Shown here: piece by piece, positions 40,901 through 53,806 of the stretch
Numbering within the stretch: the stretch's first letter is position 1
How the letters are laid out: every line of letters starts with the position of its first letter
Origin: Guillardia theta CCMP2712
Taxonomy: Eukaryota > Protista > Cryptophyta
Length of the DNA stretch: 64,000 nt
Direction of reading: 5' to 3'
Assembly (NCBI RefSeq): GCF_000315625.1
Contig: NW_005434620.1
Coordinates: forward strand, 207,694-271,693
Program-made: the position numbers and the translations under genes
The notes under the pieces: model-generated
Told to the model about the DNA's origin: nothing
The model's database searches: none
What the model saw: only the letters and a program-made list of their open reading frames with translations

Positions 40901-43021
40901 NNNNNNNNNNNNNNNNNNNNNNNNNNNNNNNNNNNNNNNNNNNNNNNNNNNNNNNNNNNNNNNNNNNNNNNNNNNNNNNNNNNNNNNNNNNNNNNNNNNN
41001 NNNNNNNNNNNNNNNNNNNNNNNNNNNNNNNNNNNNNNNNNNNNNNNNNNNNNNNNNNNNNNNNNNNNNNNNNNNNNNNNNNNNNNNNNNNNNNNNNNNN
41101 NNNNNNNNNNNNNNNNNNNNNNNNNNNNNNNNCCTCCTCCTCCTCCGCCCTCCTCCTCCTCCTCCTCCTCCTCCTCCTCCTCCTCCTCCTCCTCCTCCTC
41201 CTCCTCCTCCTCTTCCTCCCTTCTCTTCTCTTCCCGCTATTCTTCTTCCCACTACTACTTCCCTTTCCCCGTTCCAATGCTCTCTTGCACCCGCTCCCCG
41301 TCCTCCCTGTCACCCCTCCTCCCCCTGCACCTGATCGAAGGGTCGGACAAGAACGCAAGCCCGCAAGCCACCCAGTGGCACATGATAATGTAGACGGTAA
41401 CCACCTGGAAGAGAAGGGCGAGAGCTCAGTACATGAGGAGCGAAACGGATGATCGACATGTCGACCAGCCGAGGAGGGCGATAACAGGAGCAGCAGCAGA
41501 AGCGACAGGAAACCATTCCGAAAGGAGGGGGGGAGAGGAGGAGGAGGAGGAGGAGGAGCACCAGCACCAGCCGGAGAAAGCACCTGGAGGTAGATCCATC
41601 GCTGACGTATGTTGGTAGAGACTGTGCTGGCCTGCTCGTGGGATGAGTTTCAACTAGGGGACTCACATCCTGTCACGTAGAAGTTGTAGAGCTTGCGGAA
41701 GCGATAAATGCGAAGAGCCTTGCCTGTGAAGATAAAAAGGAGGAGAGGAGGAGAGAGAACAAGGAGGAGAGAGAAGAAGAAGGGAGAAGAAGGGAGAAGG
41801 AGGGAGAAGGAGGGAGAAGGAGGGGACAAAAGAAAAGTAGAAGTCAGTAACTTCATGATGAGTTGTTTCACCAAATATTCACCGAGTTTTGAAAGTTTGA
41901 AGAAACGAATGAGAGTCGTACTTGTGTTTTGCTGTTACGAGTTGTCAGCATGTGAAACTCTTCCCTTCCCTTTCAAGAGCCTCCTCTCCTCTCTTCTCCC
42001 CTCCCCTCCCATCCCATTGGCCTCTCCCCTCCCCTCCTCTCCTCTCCTCTCCTCTCCTCTCCCCTCCCATCCCATTCGCCTCTCCTCTCCCCTCCTCTCC
42101 TCTCCTCTCCTCTCCTCTCCTCTCCTCTCCCCTCCCATCCCATTCGCCTCTCCTCTCCCCTCCTCTCCTCTCCTCTCCTCTCCTCTCCTCTCCTCTCCTC
42201 TCCTCTCCTTTGCTTACATTGCTTTCCTTCGACTGAGTCGCTATGGACCACATGATGAGATCGATAGGGAGGGAGGACAGCATATCTAGAAGGAACCAAC
42301 CCTGAGAGCCGCCAACAGTCAGACAAAGAAGCAGATGTGCTCCATGTGTTCACCTGGATGTATGCTTTTGCAATGAGCAGCGGACGAGTTTCAAACTGCT
42401 CAGAAAGGCGGGAAAGGAGCTGAAAATGTTTTTAGAGAGGAAGAAGCGGGGGAACGAGGAGGAGAAGGGGGCGGAGGAGAGAGAAAGGAGGAGAAAGACG
42501 TGAAGGAGGGATCAAGTGATCTTGTGGCTACTTGAACAGCATCTTGAGATGTCGGGTAAGCCATCCTAAATGTCAAGATGACATCGACAAAGAACATCTA
42601 AAATTGAAAATAGAAATATCAGAAACTGCAACCGTTTTGCCGTCTCTCCGCCTTTACTCTCTTCTCCTCCTCCTCTCCTCTCCTCTCCTCTCCTCTCCTC
42701 TCCTCTCCTCTCCTCTCCTCTCCTCTCCTCTCCTCTCTCCTCTCCTCTCCTCTCCTCTCCTCTTCTCCACCAGTATCACCAAATCCATTAAAGTGTGCAT
42801 GATGAACCACAGGTCGTCGATCGAGCAAGTTCCTCCGGCAATACGATACTCAATGACCGTTACTTGCTGTTCATTCACTTCATGTCATTTCATTTCCCTC
42901 TCAATCACACCATGATTGCATCATCATCACTATCACCATCACCACCACCACCACCACAATCATCATCATCATCATCATCATCTTCATCGTCATCATCATC
43001 TTCATCATCATCATCTTCTTC

Positions 43022-43054
<33 letters not shown>

Positions 43055-46009
43055 GTCATCATCGTCATCATCATCATATCCATTATCATCATCGTCGTCG
43101 TCGTCATCATCATCTACATCGTCATCATTCATCTCATCTCAATCAATATCACAGTTTGCTGGATCGTTGGGTCCCTCTTGCACAGTTTCCTGGAAAGCGC
43201 ATTCAGCCATCAACATCATCGATCGTTTTCCTCTTCCACTGACCTCAAGTCGAAACTTTGCTCTTGATCTTGTCGTCTGTTTGCAATCGTTTCATTCATC
43301 TTCTTCCTCTTCATCTCACCAACTCACGTGAACACATAGGAAGGATTCAAGTTCTGCCCTGAGCCACTGAACGTCCCGGTGAGCGAACGGATGGGAGGGA
43401 AGGAGGAGATGGAGGAGAGACCTGTATGCCGAGGGAAGAAAGGAAGAACCGAAACTGATCTGATAGGGCATGCCGAAGACCTGAACACAGGGTTGAGGTG
43501 TGAGGACAAGAGGAGAAGAGAGGAAGAGGAGGAGGATGAAGAATGAAGAAGGATGAGCAAGCGAGGAAAGGAAGCTGGCAGGGAGCGAAGGGGCGAGCAG
43601 GAGCTCAGCTGGCACAGGACGAGGAGAATGAGGAGGTGGCGATACCGCGTAGAGGACGAGGAACATGATGAAAGCATCCCATGTCAGCTTCCATCGTGCT
43701 CGAGGGTTGATGATGCCTGGAGGGAATCGAAACCATTCCTGGAGGAGGAGACGAGTTGAGGAAAGAAGATCTGAACATGCGAAGATGCTGCGACAGAAAG
43801 CGAAGCAGCAAGGGCAGGTGAACCCAGGGTTTAGGTAGCAGACAATGACGATGAGTGAGGAGGAAGACAGGAAAGAAGCGTAAAGGGAGGAAGGAGAGGA
43901 AGAGGGAGAAGAAGAGGAGGGAGAGGAAGAAGTTGATTTACTTTGTTGTCTTCATCCTCGAAGTCAACGATCTGACGCCACAGTTGCTGGTCGACACTGC
44001 AGGAACGAAGGCGGTAAAGGAGATGAGATGGTCAGAAACATCCAGAAACATGAGAAGACGAGGAGGAACACAGCGATTCGAGAAGGAAGGAAAAACGATG
44101 ACAGACAATAAGACATTACAATGGGAGGAGGCGAAAGAGAAGGAGAATGATGAAGAGAACGTTCAGGAGGTGGACGTGGAGGACGTGGAGAAGGAGGAGG
44201 ACGTGGAGGACGTGGAGGACGTGGAGGACGTGGAGGAGGAGGAGGAGGAGGAGGAAGAGTTCTGCTCTTACTCTCTATGATTCAGACGGTTAATCTCTTG
44301 CTCGTCCATGCACGAGAAGCAGCGAGAGATTGACTGATGAAATCTTGAACTCCTCTCTTCCTCTCTCTTCCTCTCACCTCCCTTCCCTTCCCTTCCCTTC
44401 CCTTCCCTTCCCTTTCCTTCCCTTCCCTTCCCTTCCCTTCCTCTCTTACCTGTCCAACGCCCTTTGAAGAAGTGGCTGACAGCTTTGACATGGACGATTT
44501 GCGATCGTTGACGAACTTCCTGTAGTCTGCCCCGAGATCCAAAACCTCCCTCCTGATGTTTCAAGTCAAAGTGACCAAGAAGAGATCCAGGAGGCAACAG
44601 AAAGGAGGCGGGAGCAACATGGAGCAACATGGAGGGAGGTGACAAGGGAAGAGGCAAGAAGATTGTTGATGAACCAAAAAATGCAGAGAGATAGTGGAGA
44701 TGGAGGGGAGAGAGGAGGCAGATAGTGAGAAGGAGAGGAGGAGGCGGAGGTAGGAGATTATAGGGTCACCCGTGTTGCTTCGAGAAGTAGTCTAGAGTTG
44801 CCCGGCTCCTCGACTCCTCCTCGCTCAACGTTTTCTTCTCGGTCGTCCCAAGTTTTTGCACCATGGCAGAGTGAAATTCTTGCTCACAGCATCGGACAAC
44901 CACAAAGAGTTTGGAGTACCTAGAACATCTTGCATCAATGGCTGACAGGACCAATGAAAAGAAAAAAAACATGTCAAAGACGCTCGAATCGATGGCTCTA
45001 ACGCTGCGAACGTGGATATCCACGAAGTGAGCGTCTTCGTGTGGATCTGCTGAGCTGTAAAAGAAAAGCAAACGAACGGGGCAGGTCACTCGGTAAGTTT
45101 GCCATCTTCTTGGACGTTTTTCTCTGCTGTGAGAATTCAGCGTTCAACCCGATGCGTTCCCCTCTAGCGCCTTACATGACTTGCGGCAGCTGGTTGGTCG
45201 CCGGCAGCATCGAGGTGAGTGTAAGTGCAAGTGACCTGCAGGAGGAGCGATCAAGACAAGCAGGAGCAGAGCAGTCTCATCTTCCCACCTCCAGCATGGG
45301 GCGAGAGACTGTTTGACCGTGCAGATGCTGATCGTCGAGCCCGTTGTCCAGCACCGGGTTGAGGTTCAGCCTACCATGCGTCATTCTCGCAGGGCAGAGG
45401 AGGTGAAGATTGCCAGAGGTCCTTGCGCCTTTGAGGATACTGGGAAACAACTCCTGTGCTAGACAAGTGAGCAAAGGGAAAACAAGCAAAGTCGGTACAA
45501 GAACCGTGAAGGGATTCGATGGCTACCGATCCATTGAAAGCCTCCCTGTGATAGCATTCCTCCTACAAGGCACGGAGCGTCATGGCTGACGAGAACGGCA
45601 TCTGGCCTTCACATTCTGTTTGTCTGAAACGCCATAGATCGAGAAGTGAATCCTCTCGTTCATGATGTCACTCTGAATCCAGTTGTCAGACAACGTATTT
45701 CTTTGTCGTACAAAACAGTCTCATACCCTCTTGATGCCGGCTCTGTACTTCTCATGACAAAACACTACAACAGCAAACACCGTCAATCAAACATGATCGT
45801 GCGAACTGAGTGAGACGTCCACTCACCCATCGCGTATTGTTTCTTCCCACTCTCAGATCTTCCAAAGACTTTCAGCACTGAAACGTGAAAGGAGCATGAA
45901 AAGACTTCAGAGGTCAACAAACAGAGGATGGGTAGAAACGCTCACCAGGAGCAAGATGCTCCATATCTTCTGCATTCATCTTTTCCACGAGCTCATCGAT
46001 GGTCTCCAT
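37942..46009 (-). CDS. cyclic-nucleotide-binding-domain cation channel (CNG/HCN/KCNH-like), many exons, interrupted by gap; linkage of 5' exons uncertain
   Basis: S1 IINPRARWKLTWDAFIMFLVLYAVFGMPYQISF, S2 FFVDVILTFRMAY, S4 ALRIYRFRKL, pore YAHALKFASQVLCLLGNGDL, S6 IFVTWLGVAFMVTVAA, C-linker WRWQTNQLLDESEII, CNBD-like CDGVYLLARGQ. Confidence 0.75.
40878..41132. other. assembly gap (255 N) at a (CCT)n tract
   Basis: Run of N. Confidence 1.
41980..43135. repeat. intronic microsatellites: (CCTCT)n with CCCATCCCATT inserts, (CCTCT)n, (CAT)n
   Basis: Direct reading; the tracts lie between spliceable channel exons. Confidence 0.9.
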
Positions 46010-47090: not shown

Positions 47091-49630
47091 ATGGATGAAG
47101 AATTAGATGTGAAGAAGAAGAAGAAGAAGAAAGTGAGTGGAATCCACTTTGATGACACAATCGTGGTCTCAGAGAAGGTACAAAAACTGTCAAGAGCCAC
47201 CGGGAAGCTTATCCTGTGACAGATAATCGAGGACTCAAGCGAAGAACTGAAAGAAAGGAGAGAAGTTTGGCATGATATTCAAGAAAGAGCGAACAGCATT
47301 GATTATGTAGCGCTTTGGTCGGGCAAACACTTGCAACCTGATGGATTTGTTTCCAGGGCATATCCGATGAGAGTCCCTGTGTAAGTCCAACCTTAGAATC
47401 GAACGCGGAGGAATCGAAGCGGCAAGCAATCTCAGATGCAACAAGTGAGATGTTCACACCTTCTCCTCCCGTCTGACTTCCCTTGCTGCAAACTTGTGAT
47501 CGATGCTGTAGGTAAAGAGATATCGATTACAGCACCTCCTGAGCGAGAGAGTCAAAACGAACAAGAGAAGGAAGATGCGGATCAAGCGTTCGATTTACCT
47601 AGCGTCTCTAAATCTGGAGCATCACAAAACGAGAAGCAAGAGATTACGAGGATTCCGCGAGAGGAAGAGGTAGGAGGGAGTGAATCTAGTCTGTATCTTG
47701 TTGACTCACGTGCTCTCTTGGTAGGTCCCCTCTGCTGGATGCCCGAAACTTTCGTTGCCGAGCTTGAATGAGTTTGTGTCGGAGAAGGAGAAGGAGGAAC
47801 TGTTCAACAGACTATCAAGAGAATTGCTACAGTATGTAAGCTTGTGGCCAGAAGCTTCAAAGCTCAGCAATCAAGAACAGAAACCGCAAGCTAAACAGAA
47901 ATCGAATTCAAAACCAAACACTCGTCAACAACCGGAGGACTATCAAGTACCTGTGAAGACAAGAAAGCTTGCAGAACACTTCTTGGCTGCACTCAAAAAG
48001 TGGCTGAGCAGGACATGGCAAAAAGGAATGATTTTCAACAATACTTACCATATAGGCATCTTAATGGAGAAGGATTTGGACACCCTACGGCGAGGAAGGG
48101 ATCCCATATTCGCCACAAAGCTAGAGACAGTGTGGAATGGTGATGGTTTTGAAGTGAAATCAGTGCCAATTCTCGAAATCGAGGAAGGCGATTGGTTGAA
48201 TTTAGCTCAAAAATTCAAGACAAAGCACATTACTGGAAACAACTTTTTCCCATCCGAATCCTATCAAGCGAAATTAGATATCAATGAATTGATTGGAAAA
48301 AACGATGTTTCAAATCAAGAATTTCAATCTTTGTCAATACAAGCCGAATACGAAGAAGATACCGATGTCGGCATAAGTGTGCAATTCCAACCTCGTACTT
48401 CTCAAATCAACTTGAATACGGATGTGGACGGCAGGTTCTTCACTGATACAGCTGACATGAGGCGGGAACGAATCTTGAGACCATTCAGCAGTGAACCGAT
48501 CTTGTCCGTATCCAAAACATTTGAAGATTCGCAAAACTTTGCCCGGTTTGGAAGATCAAACTCTTTCAACAAAGGATCCGTCTTCTCAAAATATACCTCC
48601 TCTAAGCCCACCAAGAGTTTAGCGCTGGACAAACCCTTCATGGAGTTTGCAAGGTATTGTTCCTTCAATCTTGAAGTTACTCGCTGACTATCGTGGAAGA
48701 GTGTATACTGGATGCTCTCGACCATCCATGCGCATACTCGAGCAGTGTAAGCAGCCATACATCCAGTACACTGAGAACCAGAAAAGAACTCAAGCATTGC
48801 TGGCGTTTCAGTCCATCTTGAAGACAGTCGAAAGCAGCTATCCAGACGAGCCGGTAACATGCAGTCCCTTGACCACACACGAACTTTAACCTCTTTGTAA
48901 TCAGTTTGTAGAAGTGGTGGATTCAGATTTAACAGTGCAGAAAGAAAATCATATAGATACCGATAGACAAGAAAAGATACGCGAGGCAAAAGAACAATTT
49001 TCGCAAGTCACAAGGTCAAATCTTTCAACAATCATTCGAAGAGCTTTTGATTATTGAGCACATCAGGTCTTTTGAGCAATCTCAGCGCAGCAAAGATCTA
49101 CTGCAGCAAGGGCTGAATCATGACGACTCGTCAGCCTTTAAGGCAAACACTGTTGAATTCCTGAGAAGACCGTTGCAACGAGTCATTCAGCGCGATTCAA
49201 ATCTTTTGAAATCTCTGCAGATCTGTGCAAAAGTTTTGGATGAACATCACAACAGCAAGAGGATTTACGCGGGCAGAAGCTGGGACAATCCATTTCATAA
49301 AGGGGCTGATCTGCTCTACGTCAATCAAGCTCCCCTGCCAGGAATCAAGTTGAGCAAATCAAGTTTGACGTCGCCAAAGCAAGAATTCTCAAACGTGAGA
49401 AACAGGAAGGGCCCAAAAAGGTTGCAGGATGCAATGCTCTGCCTCCATTCCTGCGCTGACCGACGTACCAGGTTGACAATGACCTTCAACGGGAGCGACT
49501 TCGAGCATTCGAAGGACATTTCTGTCCCTCAAAGTCCGTACTCGTATAAGGTAATCTCTTGTACATACTTCTCGTCCTGACCTGATTTGCGCAGGTGCAA
49601 TTCCCTAAATTCAAAGCTCTCAAAATGTAG
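47091..49630 (+). CDS. hypothetical protein, multi-exon
   Basis: MDEELDVKKKKKK..., long ORFs 47755-48687 and 49047-49580 linkable by short GT-AG introns; no family recognised. Confidence 0.6.
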
Positions 49631-49736
49631 CAAGTTTTCCATGTTCTATTAATTTACTATACACGTACAAAAATTGTTTCTTTGCAATCAGAAGAAAGTA
49701 CTGAACGTCGCAATCCAAGAAGAAAAGCAATCAATA

Positions 49737-50923
49737 TTAGATCTCCTTGAAGGGGCCCCAACCAGCAGTTGCAATGTCAACAACAAGTCCACAAACAAGA
49801 CCCTGGCAAAAAGAGATGTCATGCACAACCATGAAAGCTTCTAAGAGCACAAACTTTAAGTAGTGTGTTGACTCACCAGCCCTGTTATAACGCCGACGAA
49901 AGCTAAATCCAACGTGCTCAGTTTTCCTTGATACGGTTGAATTAGAGGAGGATTTTCCTACCCTTGCATGTCAGCAGGCACATTGAGTTGTTGAGATCAG
50001 AACTCACAGGATACTGCGTGGAGCTTGTTGAAGCACTGAAAGGGTGGATCAGCTTTTCTATCAACTCAACAGTTCATGATGTCAACCTTTCGATGGGCAT
50101 GGGAGTCGTTTGGGGGAGAGTAGTTTCTGTGGTAGACGCGGTTGTTGTAGTGGTTGTTTGAGAGGTTGTACCCGAGTTGGTCGAGTTGGTCGTGTTAGAA
50201 GCATTGGTTGTCGGGATAGGTGTAGTCGAAGTTATTGGTGTGGTGGAGGTAGTGGTCTGTATGGAACATCAAACATGGATTTTTGCGCAATGTTTCTTAC
50301 CTCTTGGGGACATGTGCTCTCTGTGCAACAAGTGTAATAGATTAAAATGCCCAATGTCGCATTGTTGTAGATCACTTTGTAGGATCCGGTACTGGACGGA
50401 ATCTGTAAGAAAGTCAAGGTGGAAATGACTTCCAGCCGATGGCACCATGGAATTGGAAGAAGGACTTGTAATTGGGCACACGAATATGGACGTTGTTTTC
50501 CATCTGAATTTCTAGTCATTTCGCAGGCAATCTCAAACAAAGCGAAATACGTGTCATTGTAACAACCCCTACTGTGTATGTTGGATGGAACTGATACATA
50601 CTGGCTTGGTACTGTTGCAATAGACATTAGTAAGTAAAACAGCTTGGAAAGACTTGACCTATGTAGGAGAACGATTTGTTATTTGTCGAGTTGTCATATT
50701 TTAATTCCCAGATATCATAGCAGTATGTTTCATTCTGTGTACATGATGCTTGCTGCCCGTTGCTCTGCGATATCATCGTGATCACATGTCACGAGCAAGG
50801 AGGAGTAGTTCTCACCTGATAGCACATCAACGATGAGCTTTCTGCCGACCTCATCGCCTCCATGAGCAGCAGCGCAACCACCTGCCATGTTGTCGCCCCC
50901 CTCACCATCGCCCCCTTGAACAT
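49737..50923 (-). CDS. cell-surface protein: signal peptide, three-finger (Ly6/uPAR-like) Cys pattern, Thr-rich stalk, C-terminal membrane anchor; 8 exons
   Basis: Exons 50923-50816, 50764-50659, 50611-50466, 50402-50301, 50256-50087, 50035-50008, 49957-49877, 49802-49737 all in phase; LMCYQ..CTQNETYCYDIW..RGC..C..CCTESTC. Confidence 0.7.
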
Positions 50924-50942
50924 GGATGTGCCGCTTCACTCA

Positions 50943-51012
50943 CAGTTGTTTTCCGTTGGAAGTCCGTTACACTTTCAAGTTGCTACCGCTTCCGAAACCG
51001 TTATCACCGTTA
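50943..51012 (-). promoter_or_regulatory. cluster of five YAACKG (MYB / MSA-like) sites in a short divergent intergenic region
   Basis: cagttg, ccgttg, ccgtta, ccgtta, ccgtta within 70 bp, all in the same orientation. Confidence 0.4.
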
Positions 51013-51183
51013 CCGCCTTTTCATAAGCGAAAAAGGCGGGAATGGTGCGGGAACAATGTGCAAGGGAATGGAATGCACGAAGGAGGCGCTTTACCGTGAT
51101 GTGATGATTGTTGTAAAGTACAAGCTGATTGAACAAGTTTGAACAAGTTTGAACACAAGTAAATAGAGCAGAAAGAAGACAAC

Positions 51184-53806
51184 ATGCAGAGCTGTTCTCA
51201 AGATATGTCCAGGATTCTGAATCTTCGGAAGAAGATACATCATGAAAAAGAAGCTATTGAATCATTGGAGTCCTTGATGCACCACAAAGGCAATAAAGTG
51301 CTCAACCAATTCCAAGAAATGTGTTTTGATGACGAGGAGTGCATGAAGGAAAGATTGCATGTGTTGGAGCATGAAGGTTTGAATCCCTGTCACAGGGTAA
51401 AGCCTTGCTACAGTACTGGCATCTCTCGGCGCGACTTTGAATTTTTTGCTAAGATGTGCAGATTGAAACTCTGCAGAAAAGTTTTCAGGCACTGGGTTTC
51501 CTTGAATGCTTCAATTCATTCCAAAACGAGAGATCTGAATGTTGCTCTTCTAGACCGGTATCGTCATTCGAAGGTGAAACGAAGATCTCTTCTCACATGG
51601 AAAAAGCTTACATTGCAGCAAATGTCCATCGGAGCAAAGCTTCAATTTCAAGCGTTTGCTGCAATGAAACGTGCAATAGTATCGTGGCGAGATGGCCTGT
51701 TCATAATCGCCTTACAAGTCAAGAATTGGAAAAGGCTAACACATGAAATGAAGGTCGATCGATTTGAGGTGAAATCTTCGGTGATCACTGTTTGTGATCG
51801 GTCTTTGAAAACGAATGTCCAGCTCATGGTGCTGAAGGCGTGGAGGGGTCTTTTGGTTTCTAAATCTAGAACTTACCGCTGTTTGGAAACCATCTTGTCT
51901 TTGTCATTTTCAAAAGCCCTTGTGCGCAAGATATTTATTCAAAGCATGTTTTTTCGTTGGTCCGAAGCCCTTTACACGAAGAGAAAACAATCGCATTTGA
52001 AATCTGTCACAGCCTTCTTAAGGATGACAAAAGCCCTTCTTTCAAGGAAAAGACAGGTTTCTGGAGAAGTTGATAGCCGTCAAGCTTCAAGACTTAGCAG
52101 GATTGAAATTACCCTGGATTTTGACAAGAACGAGACATCTCATAGCTCTATCTTGATGGTCAATATGGATCTGAAACTCTTCTGTGTCGTTGTGAGTAGA
52201 ATTCCATTGAAGGGAATAATTCGAGATTCAAAATTTGAACTTGTGAAGCAACTCAAATCGACCTGTATAGTGAAGAACTTCACACAAAACAGCCGTGTGA
52301 TGGAAACCAAGACCTTGCGGCTGGTGCAAGTGATTCCATTTCTTGTGAACATTGCAGTCAAAGCACTATTCATAGGATGGAAGAAAACTGCAAGCAGACC
52401 TCAAAATGTTGCTTGTAGACACAACACAAAAGAAGTCAAGACACCAGTACAGAACATCGACCAAACCGTTGTCTGTGAGAATGATGTGAAAGTTTAATCA
52501 AATGATCTTGTGACTTTTATTACAGGTATTAAACAACAATGCAAGAGCCGAGTGACTGAGAAGTGCGTGTTTCGAAGGTGTGCCAAAAATCACCTGAAAC
52601 GCTATTTTGGTAAACCCAAGCGATTTGGAGAAAAACTGAAGCACAGAATTTGCAAACCTTTTCCATCGGATCACCAATATAACCAACTATCCACAATCGA
52701 TCTGATCGACAAACGTCTATCCTCACAAATCCGCAAAGATGAAGAAACCAAGATAAGCATTGCAACCGTTCCTTCGATAAATGAGCAGAATCCGGCCGGG
52801 CTAGCAAGCAGCGTGATGGCGGGGGCGTCAGAGCTTGCAGCCGAGGACCTCGCAGCAGCAGAGCCAGAGGCAGGGGGAGCAGAGGGAGCAGAGGAAGCAG
52901 AGGAGGAGTCGCGAGGGGCGGACGTCGGGCACACGGTCAGGCAGGACGGAGGGCAGATACGGACGACGGAGGCGGAGGCGACCCCGCTGAGGCTAGCGGT
53001 AGGGGAGCAGTATCCGGCCGGGCTAGCAAGCAGCGTGATGGCGGGGGCGTCAGAGCTGGCAGCCGAGGACCTCGCAGCAGCAGAGCCAGAGGCAGGGGGA
53101 GCAGAGGGAGCAGAGGAGGAGTCGCGAGGGGCGGACGTCGGGCACACGGTCAGGCAGGACGGAGGGCAGATACGGACGACGGAGGCGGAGGCGACCCCGC
53201 TGAGGCTAGCGGTAGGGGAGCAGTATCCGGCCGGGCTAGCGAGCAGCGTGATGGCGGGGGCGTCAGAGCTGGCAGCCGAGGACCTCGCAGCAGCAGAGCC
53301 AGAGGCAGGGGGAGCAGAGGAAGCAGAGGAGGAGTCGCGAGGGGCGGACGTCGGGCTGAGTCGGAGGGCTTCAATCATTAAGTCTCGCTGTAAGTTTGTG
53401 TTTACCTTGTGTTCTTGTTTGACTTTTTTGTTTAGCTGGATGTGCTTGCGACGAGCATGAGCCGCCAGGGATACAGGTTGACTACGCCTCGTCACCTTGC
53501 TCAGAAGTGTCTAGCTCGCCGATCTCCTCAAGGGCCCTGCTGATCGAATTCAGCGAGACCAAATCCAGCGTCCACAGGTCACGGCGGGTCCTCAAACTGA
53601 TCAACTCCAACTGCTGTCAAAGTGTTGAATCAATCACGTCTGAGTTGGTGGTGGAGCAGCGCAAGTGCACTGTGACGAAGAGATCGCAGAGAGAAGCATC
53701 GCGATCGAAGGAGAACGTCATCCCACCCTCTCCGAAGGGCAAGGAGGCAGAGGGAGGGCCGAGCAGTCTTTTCACCGTTTGGGAACCTGTGCTTGCCTTC
53801 CGATAG
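51184..53806 (+). CDS. Sfi1-like Trp-repeat (putative centrin-binding) protein with acidic tandem-repeat insert
   Basis: Recurrent motifs VFRHW, LLTWKK, IVSWRD, LKAWRG, FFRWSE, FIGWKK; ORFs 51184-52497 and 52510-53460 joined by a 51-nt intron; last exon uncertain. Confidence 0.55.
52783..53355 (+). repeat. in-frame GC-rich tandem repeat, units 222 bp, 213 bp and a partial third
   Basis: Near-identical copies encoding PAGLASSVMAGASELAAEDLAAAEPEAGGAE... Confidence 0.95.

Follow-up and report, generated by a model that had tools for sequence, protein, structure and literature searches.

A candidate eight-exon gene of Guillardia theta for a predicted mucin-stalked, cysteine-rich membrane glycoprotein, and its doubtful kinship with three-finger proteins

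One locus in the cryptophyte Guillardia theta CCMP2712 raises two questions: whether a gene lies hidden there across many short exons, and whether the cysteine-rich surface protein that it would encode belongs with the three-finger (Ly6/uPAR) proteins. The locus lies on the minus strand of the window, meaning the whole 64,000-nt stretch of DNA that was analysed. A preliminary description of this DNA had proposed both. Its proposal of a hidden multi-exon gene for a predicted secreted, membrane-anchored Cys-rich protein is upheld here by splice signals beyond chance, a signal-like start and a strong C-terminal helix, and the candidate is very probably a real gene. Our favoured reading goes further, to a single-copy nuclear gene of G. 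theta CCMP2712, lineage-restricted and unannotated, whose product is a type I membrane glycoprotein; we consider it rather more probable than its rivals taken together, with room left for doubt. Placement in the Ly6/uPAR family fared less well, as set out below.

A frame script applied to the minus strand from 50923 to 49737 yields eight exons which, once seven GT-AG introns are removed (51, 47, 63, 44, 51, 50 and 74 nt from 5' to 3'), join into a 268-codon frame. The coding sequence comprises 807 nt (268 aa) with no internal stops and closes with TAA at 49739-49737. Its ATG is the first to follow an in-frame stop five codons upstream, and the whole gene sits within a 1.6-kb gap between two plus-strand open reading frames (ORFs). 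Its parts, in the direction of reading, are as follows:

50816-50923, minus strand: exon 1, 108 nt, 36 aa; ATG, a signal-peptide-like segment, then L-M-C-Y-Q with the first Cys
50765-50815, minus strand: intron 1, 51 nt; donor GTGAGA, acceptor CAG, phase 0
50659-50764, minus strand: exon 2, 106 nt; Cys 44 and Cys 51 (C-x6-C), three N-x-S/T sequons
50612-50658, minus strand: intron 2, 47 nt; weak donor GTCAAG, acceptor CAG, phase 1
50466-50611, minus strand: exon 3, 146 nt; Cys 88 (in S-R-G-C), Cys 101 and Cys 116
50403-50465, minus strand: intron 3, 63 nt; very weak donor GTCCTT, TTGAC branch, pyrimidine tract, CAG
50301-50402, minus strand: exon 4, 102 nt; closes the Cys-rich head with Y-Y-T-C-C-x4-C-P
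50257-50300, minus strand: intron 4, 44 nt; donor GTAAGA, branch TTGAT, acceptor CAG, phase 0
50087-50256, minus strand: exon 5, 170 nt; Thr/Ser/Pro-rich mucin-like stalk, three N-x-S/T sequons
50036-50086, minus strand: intron 5, 51 nt; weak donor GTTGAC, acceptor CAG, phase 2
50008-50035, minus strand: exon 6, 28 nt; last part of the stalk
49958-50007, minus strand: intron 6, 50 nt; donor GTGAGT, acceptor TAG, phase 0
49877-49957, minus strand: exon 7, 81 nt; juxtamembrane linker rich in Pro, then the first half of the predicted transmembrane helix
49803-49876, minus strand: intron 7, 74 nt; donor GTGAGT, pyrimidine tract, acceptor CAG, phase 0
49737-49802, minus strand: exon 8, 66 nt; remaining half of the helix, six-residue tail G-P-F-K-E-I, TAA stop

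This model reproduces exactly the eight short exons and seven in-phase GT-AG introns of the preliminary description. The spliced frame contains the peptide stretches quoted there, the Thr-rich stalk (exon 5) and the hydrophobic end, and it shows the three peculiarities that had been flagged, namely a final CP in place of CN (the end of exon 4 reads C-P-Q-E), nine ectodomain Cys and a 63-nt third intron that is in frame. Intron 1, which falls two residues behind the first Cys, must be spliced, since it contains an in-frame TGA. Branch-like motifs lie near the 3' ends of intron 2 (CTAAT, 15 nt from the end), intron 5 (CTGAT, 13 nt), intron 6 (CTGAC, 13 nt) and intron 7 (TGAC, 16 nt). Intron 3 is free of stops and may simply be coding sequence; its retention would add 21 residues and one Cys, bringing the ectodomain to ten. 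An alternative 3' end (donor at 50003, intron 7 retained, stop unchanged) is less likely, as its donor is poor and it bypasses two consensus GTGAGT donors.

The predicted spliced product has a coherent order of parts. Exon 1 opens with a basic n-region, the hydrophobic core WQVVALLLM and a Ser-rich c-region; the 19-residue Kyte-Doolittle mean is about 1.0-1.1 at residues 2-6, and the core is short, with a Glu after it. Nine Cys fall in the ectodomain, at residues 34, 44, 51, 88, 101, 116, 145, 146 and 151, and a further one, Cys 251, lies in the C-terminal hydrophobic helix. The spacings within the head are x9, x6, x36, x12, x14, x28, CC and x4, and Cys 34 to Cys 151 span 118 residues (139 with intron 3 kept). 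The predicted mature head measures about 123 residues, or about 144 should intron 3 be retained, and carries five of the eight N-x-S/T sequons of the spliced protein. It is followed by a stalk of 68 residues (155-222) that is 59% Ser+Thr and 10% Pro, and then by a hydrophobic helix of 25 residues, whose best 19-residue Kyte-Doolittle window reaches 2.25 at residues 239-258, and a six-residue tail. By hydropathy and composition, this combination of a signal-like start, a Ser/Thr/Pro region and a single anchor is that of a mucin-like type I membrane glycoprotein, a descriptive class and no homology family. A GPI signal is the less likely form for the predicted anchor because the hydrophobic stretch is long, ends in charged residues and has no good small-residue site ahead of it. 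With an odd number of Cys in the ectodomain, one of them may be free to bond with another molecule, or intron 3 may be retained and bring the number to ten.

Structure prediction was applied to the contiguous stretch formed by exon 3, intron 3 and exon 4. The best AF2 model reached a pLDDT of 60.6 and the five models disagreed (34.6 to 60.6); at this low confidence the piece is mostly beta, with the residues encoded by intron 3 forming a strand. A Foldseek search of the PDB with the same low-confidence piece gave a best E value of 0.31 and no match at E up to 0.001.

Searches for relatives, in which the queries were single exons or the contiguous 103-aa stretch of exon 3, intron 3 and exon 4, returned almost nothing. 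No Pfam family was matched at E up to 10 by any of the eight exons singly or by the 103-aa stretch, and no PDB chain was matched at E up to 10 by that stretch or by exons 2, 3 and 4 singly. A word search of a 5.8-billion-protein set, covering lengths of 81-259 aa, found no relative; phmmer against 1.84 billion representative proteins gave no match to exons 3-4, self included; and viral contigs and metagenome contigs queried with the candidate gene contained no relative. The ESM Atlas returned a single match, scoring 0.75 with low recognition. G. theta CCMP2712 proteins are present in the searched collection, in which GUITHDRAFT_111764 was matched at 100%, so that the missing self-match shows exons 3-4 to be absent from every public model and transcript-derived protein there. 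Protein and DNA searches of the organism's own genome (87.1 Mb, 669 contigs) revealed no second copy and no paralogue of exon 2; a weak match on contig C45 was judged spurious. A six-frame search of the genome with PF00021 (UPAR_LY6) found none, at low power for a domain split over four exons, and frames with CC-x4-C elsewhere in the window occur at about chance level, with no second such gene among them. The candidate gene is thus single-copy and absent from the searched public protein sets, and it appears to be restricted to the G. theta lineage.

The first rival to a lineage-specific head is that it is a genuine three-finger fold, enlarged and divergent, either as an ancient homologue or by convergence, and that it would serve as a membrane-tethered binding module in the manner of CD59/Ly6 or of a TGF-beta-receptor ectodomain. 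The LU domain comprises 60-90 residues arranged as three beta-hairpin fingers, with ten Cys paired 1-5, 2-3, 4-6, 7-8 and 9-10, of which the 2-3 pair is often lost, and with a non-glycosylated Asn invariably after its last Cys (PMC6600238). The candidate shares several marks with Ly6/uPAR proteins (CD59, Ly6, snake three-finger toxins; PF00021/PF00087). These comprise L-x-C at the predicted mature N-terminus, an early C-x6-C (Cys 44/51), a mid-domain R-G-C, and a C-terminal CC-x4-C after aromatic residues (Y-Y-x-C-C-x4-C) at the end of the domain. Common to both is also a secreted, membrane-anchored design, with a hydrophobic start and a 25-residue helix at the C-terminus by hydropathy, and the partial, low-confidence AF2 model agrees in being mostly beta.

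Against these likenesses stand the features by which the family is defined. The Cys span of the head is 118 residues and not 60-90; nine ectodomain Cys replace the eight or ten at fixed spacing, and Pro occupies the place of the invariant Asn (PMC6600238). The loop spacings of 36, 12, 14 and 28 residues lie far outside those of the family, with candidate loops 2 and 3 two to three times too long. The anchor is a predicted transmembrane helix behind a long mucin stalk, whereas LU proteins have a GPI signal directly after the domain, and the head introns fall in phases 0/1/0, in contrast to the phase-1 exon set of animal LU genes (PMC6600238). The profiles PF00021, PF00087 and PF01064 were unmatched per exon, a test of low power for a domain over four exons. 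Searched piece by piece, the head also found no partner among PDB sequences, despite the many three-finger chains held there, in the 1.84 billion proteins or, by detectable similarity, at other loci of its own genome, where the low-power UPAR_LY6 search was equally blank. Finally, a 2026 survey reported TFPs to be absent from plants, fungi and choanoflagellates and placed the origin of the fold at the base of animals, and since it found none outside animals, the prior for a three-finger fold here is low (PMC13719153).

The candidate is accordingly not classed as a member of the LU family because three defining features (length, Cys count and invariant Asn) were tested and found wanting; the family membership advanced in the preliminary description is unsupported, given those features and the lack of any match, exon by exon, in Pfam, the PDB or the protein libraries. 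The three-finger sequence marks that it had listed hold in part: L-x-C, C-x6-C, R-G-C and CC-x4-C are there, while the remaining spacings, the final Asn and the number of Cys do not conform. A three-finger-like fold for the head, convergent or very divergent, is unlikely but keeps a modest probability. The reading preferred here is that the head, as judged from its predicted sequence, is an orphan domain which has three local Cys spacings in common with Ly6/uPAR proteins and lacks their defining features.

Two other groups of cell-surface proteins bear comparison with this predicted orphan head. The ectodomains of TGF-beta/activin receptors (Activin_recp, PF01064) resemble the candidate in their type I topology and their N-terminal Cys-rich ectodomain. 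Activin type II receptors have three Cys between R/K-G-C and the terminal CC-x4-C, which would be a further likeness. Unlike these receptors, the candidate has no kinase or cytoplasmic domain beyond its six-residue tail and no Pfam match; it is also short of one Cys of the terminal cluster and of the final Asn, and has a 70-residue mucin stalk inserted. Oomycete elicitin-like proteins combine a small Cys-rich head with Thr/Ser/Pro linkers as membrane-anchored surface glycoproteins. With these and other mucin-stalk proteins the candidate shares a predicted signal peptide, a disulfide-rich head, a Thr/Ser/Pro stalk, a C-terminal anchor and many sequons; per-exon Pfam searches detect no relation between its head and elicitin, CFEM or other catalogued Cys-rich domains.

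The second rival holds that the locus is not a working gene at all. It would then be a relic, decaying or never expressed, or else the model would be wrong in part, a low-complexity tract of Thr codons and some hydrophobic stretches having been threaded together via GT-AG pairs. Such threading comes easily. With GT-AG pairs alone and introns of 40-80 nt, a path of at least 807 nt was obtained in 67 of 100 dinucleotide shuffles of the locus; since so many shuffles do as well, in-phase GT-AG splicing is no evidence by itself, and it was dropped as an argument for the gene. The outcome is different once a YAG acceptor and a TRAY branch motif are required. Under these rules the longest path on the real minus strand is 948 nt, a length found in none of 100 shuffles; 807 nt is attained in 0-3 of 100, and the shuffle means are 302-406 nt; the plus strand of the locus attains only 168-396 nt.

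The individual signals tell the same way. Relative to a background made up of every GT..AG pair in the window that is 44-74 nt long, GTRAG donors in four of the seven introns (binomial p 7.5e-5), YAG acceptors in all seven (p 6e-4) and TRAY at 8-25 nt from the 3' end, again in all seven (p 1.4e-5), are in excess; the branch window was chosen after these introns and real introns had been viewed, and the result is stable over three windows. In five of the seven the branch motif takes the form YTRAY at 11-15 nt. The eight reference introns, from HSP70 and kinase genes of the same genome, are likewise short, start with GTR (mostly GTGAG), end in YAG and usually carry CTGAC, TTGAC or CTGAT about 11-20 nt before the 3' end. 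The splice signals of the candidate gene exceed chance. What they leave to the sceptic is three weak donors, those of introns 2, 3 and 5 (GTCAAG, GTCCTT and GTTGAC), which lack the +3 purine present in 8/8 reference introns; for introns 2 and 5, no alternative donor preserves the frame.

Codon usage, too, might be taken as a sign that the frame does not code. A model built from 37 in-frame segments of HSP70 and kinase genes in this genome gives the candidate gene -0.11 bits per codon, where true frames score +0.42 and other frames -0.56. The GC3 of the candidate is 0.49, and the median for kinase genes is 0.74. The neighbouring ORFs of 177-437 aa are equally unbiased (GC3 0.46-0.56 against the same kinase median of 0.74), and because such long ORFs in this AT-rich region show no more bias than the candidate, the missing coding signature says nothing for or against the gene.

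In favour of a relic or a faulty model, there remain the odd Cys count and the lack of any annotated or transcript-derived protein, or of any homologue, in the searched protein, viral and metagenome sets. Weighed against the branch motifs at real-intron distance in every intron, the near failure of shuffles and of the opposite strand under the same rules, the coherent order of signal peptide, Cys-rich head, stalk and transmembrane helix, and the neat fit of the model into the gap between its plus-strand neighbours, the absence of a working gene is quite improbable.

The DNA around the candidate gene supplies a possible site for its promoter:

50924-51183, no strand assigned: divergent intergenic region, 260 bp, from the ATG of the candidate gene to the start of the plus-strand ORF at 51184

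This 260-bp region is presumed to be a shared promoter. It holds a 17-nt inverted repeat (51005-51021 and 51031-51047, 88% complementary, with a 9-nt loop) and tandem TTGAACAAGT copies at 51129-51148, both of which may be promoter elements. Across it lies an ATG-started ORF of 437 aa (51184-52494, plus strand) that has no Pfam family and of which only the last 14% falls within the annotated gene GUITHDRAFT_111764. The latter protein, which gave the 100% match to a neighbouring ORF, maps to 52300-53803 on the plus strand, and the upstream ~370 codons of the 437-aa ORF belong either to a gene that lacks annotation or to a 5' extension that was missed. Further along, within the GUITHDRAFT_111764 gene, 52510-53495 comprises three tandem copies of an Ala/Glu/Gly-rich unit of about 70 residues, with long frames open on the plus strand (316 aa) and on the minus strand (274 aa) alike. 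The alignment of the annotated protein falls to 93% over this interval and has 22 gap columns, which points to either an annotated intron or repeats of unequal length.

On a broader scale, the interval 48000-52000 forms an AT-rich island with a GC content of 0.43-0.44, against 0.50-0.60 around it. Its ORFs match no Pfam family, and the island is a patch of lineage-specific, weakly biased genes. Elsewhere in the window, long microsatellites of a (CTCCT)n-like type occur at 42655-42770, followed by about 200 nt of (CAT)n-like repeat at 42920-43130.

Taken as a single-copy gene for a type I membrane glycoprotein, the candidate would be transcribed from the short divergent intergenic region, and its seven short introns, whose signals are visible in the DNA, would be removed, with the in-frame intron 3 perhaps staying in the message. 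The N-terminal signal peptide would direct the product to the ER and, judging from hydropathy, be cut near S-S-S / L-M-C. The head of about 120 residues would then fold as a disulfide-bonded module, probably rich in beta structure, with five sequons for N-glycans; its nine Cys could form four disulfides and leave one Cys free, or number ten if intron 3 is kept. The composition of the Thr/Ser/Pro stalk, about 70 residues long, is that expected of an O-glycosylated spacer holding the head away from the membrane, in which the 25-residue helix and the six-residue tail would act as the anchor. The likely role of the protein would be to present a binding head on the outside of the cell, where it could serve in adhesion or recognition or in attaching periplast or surface material. 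Its function, like its secretion, glycosylation and topology, is inferred from the encoded protein.

The candidate adds one unannotated, lineage-restricted predicted surface glycoprotein gene to a model cryptophyte, and it indicates that public annotation has missed genes with short exons where the G. theta genome is AT-rich and weakly biased. Should the head prove to be a three-finger domain after all, a cryptophyte example, and still more a set of related ones, would reopen the question of the origin of the fold, now placed at the base of animals (PMC13719153); an enlarged LU-like head in a cryptophyte would mean that the fold either predates animals or arose twice (PMC13719153).
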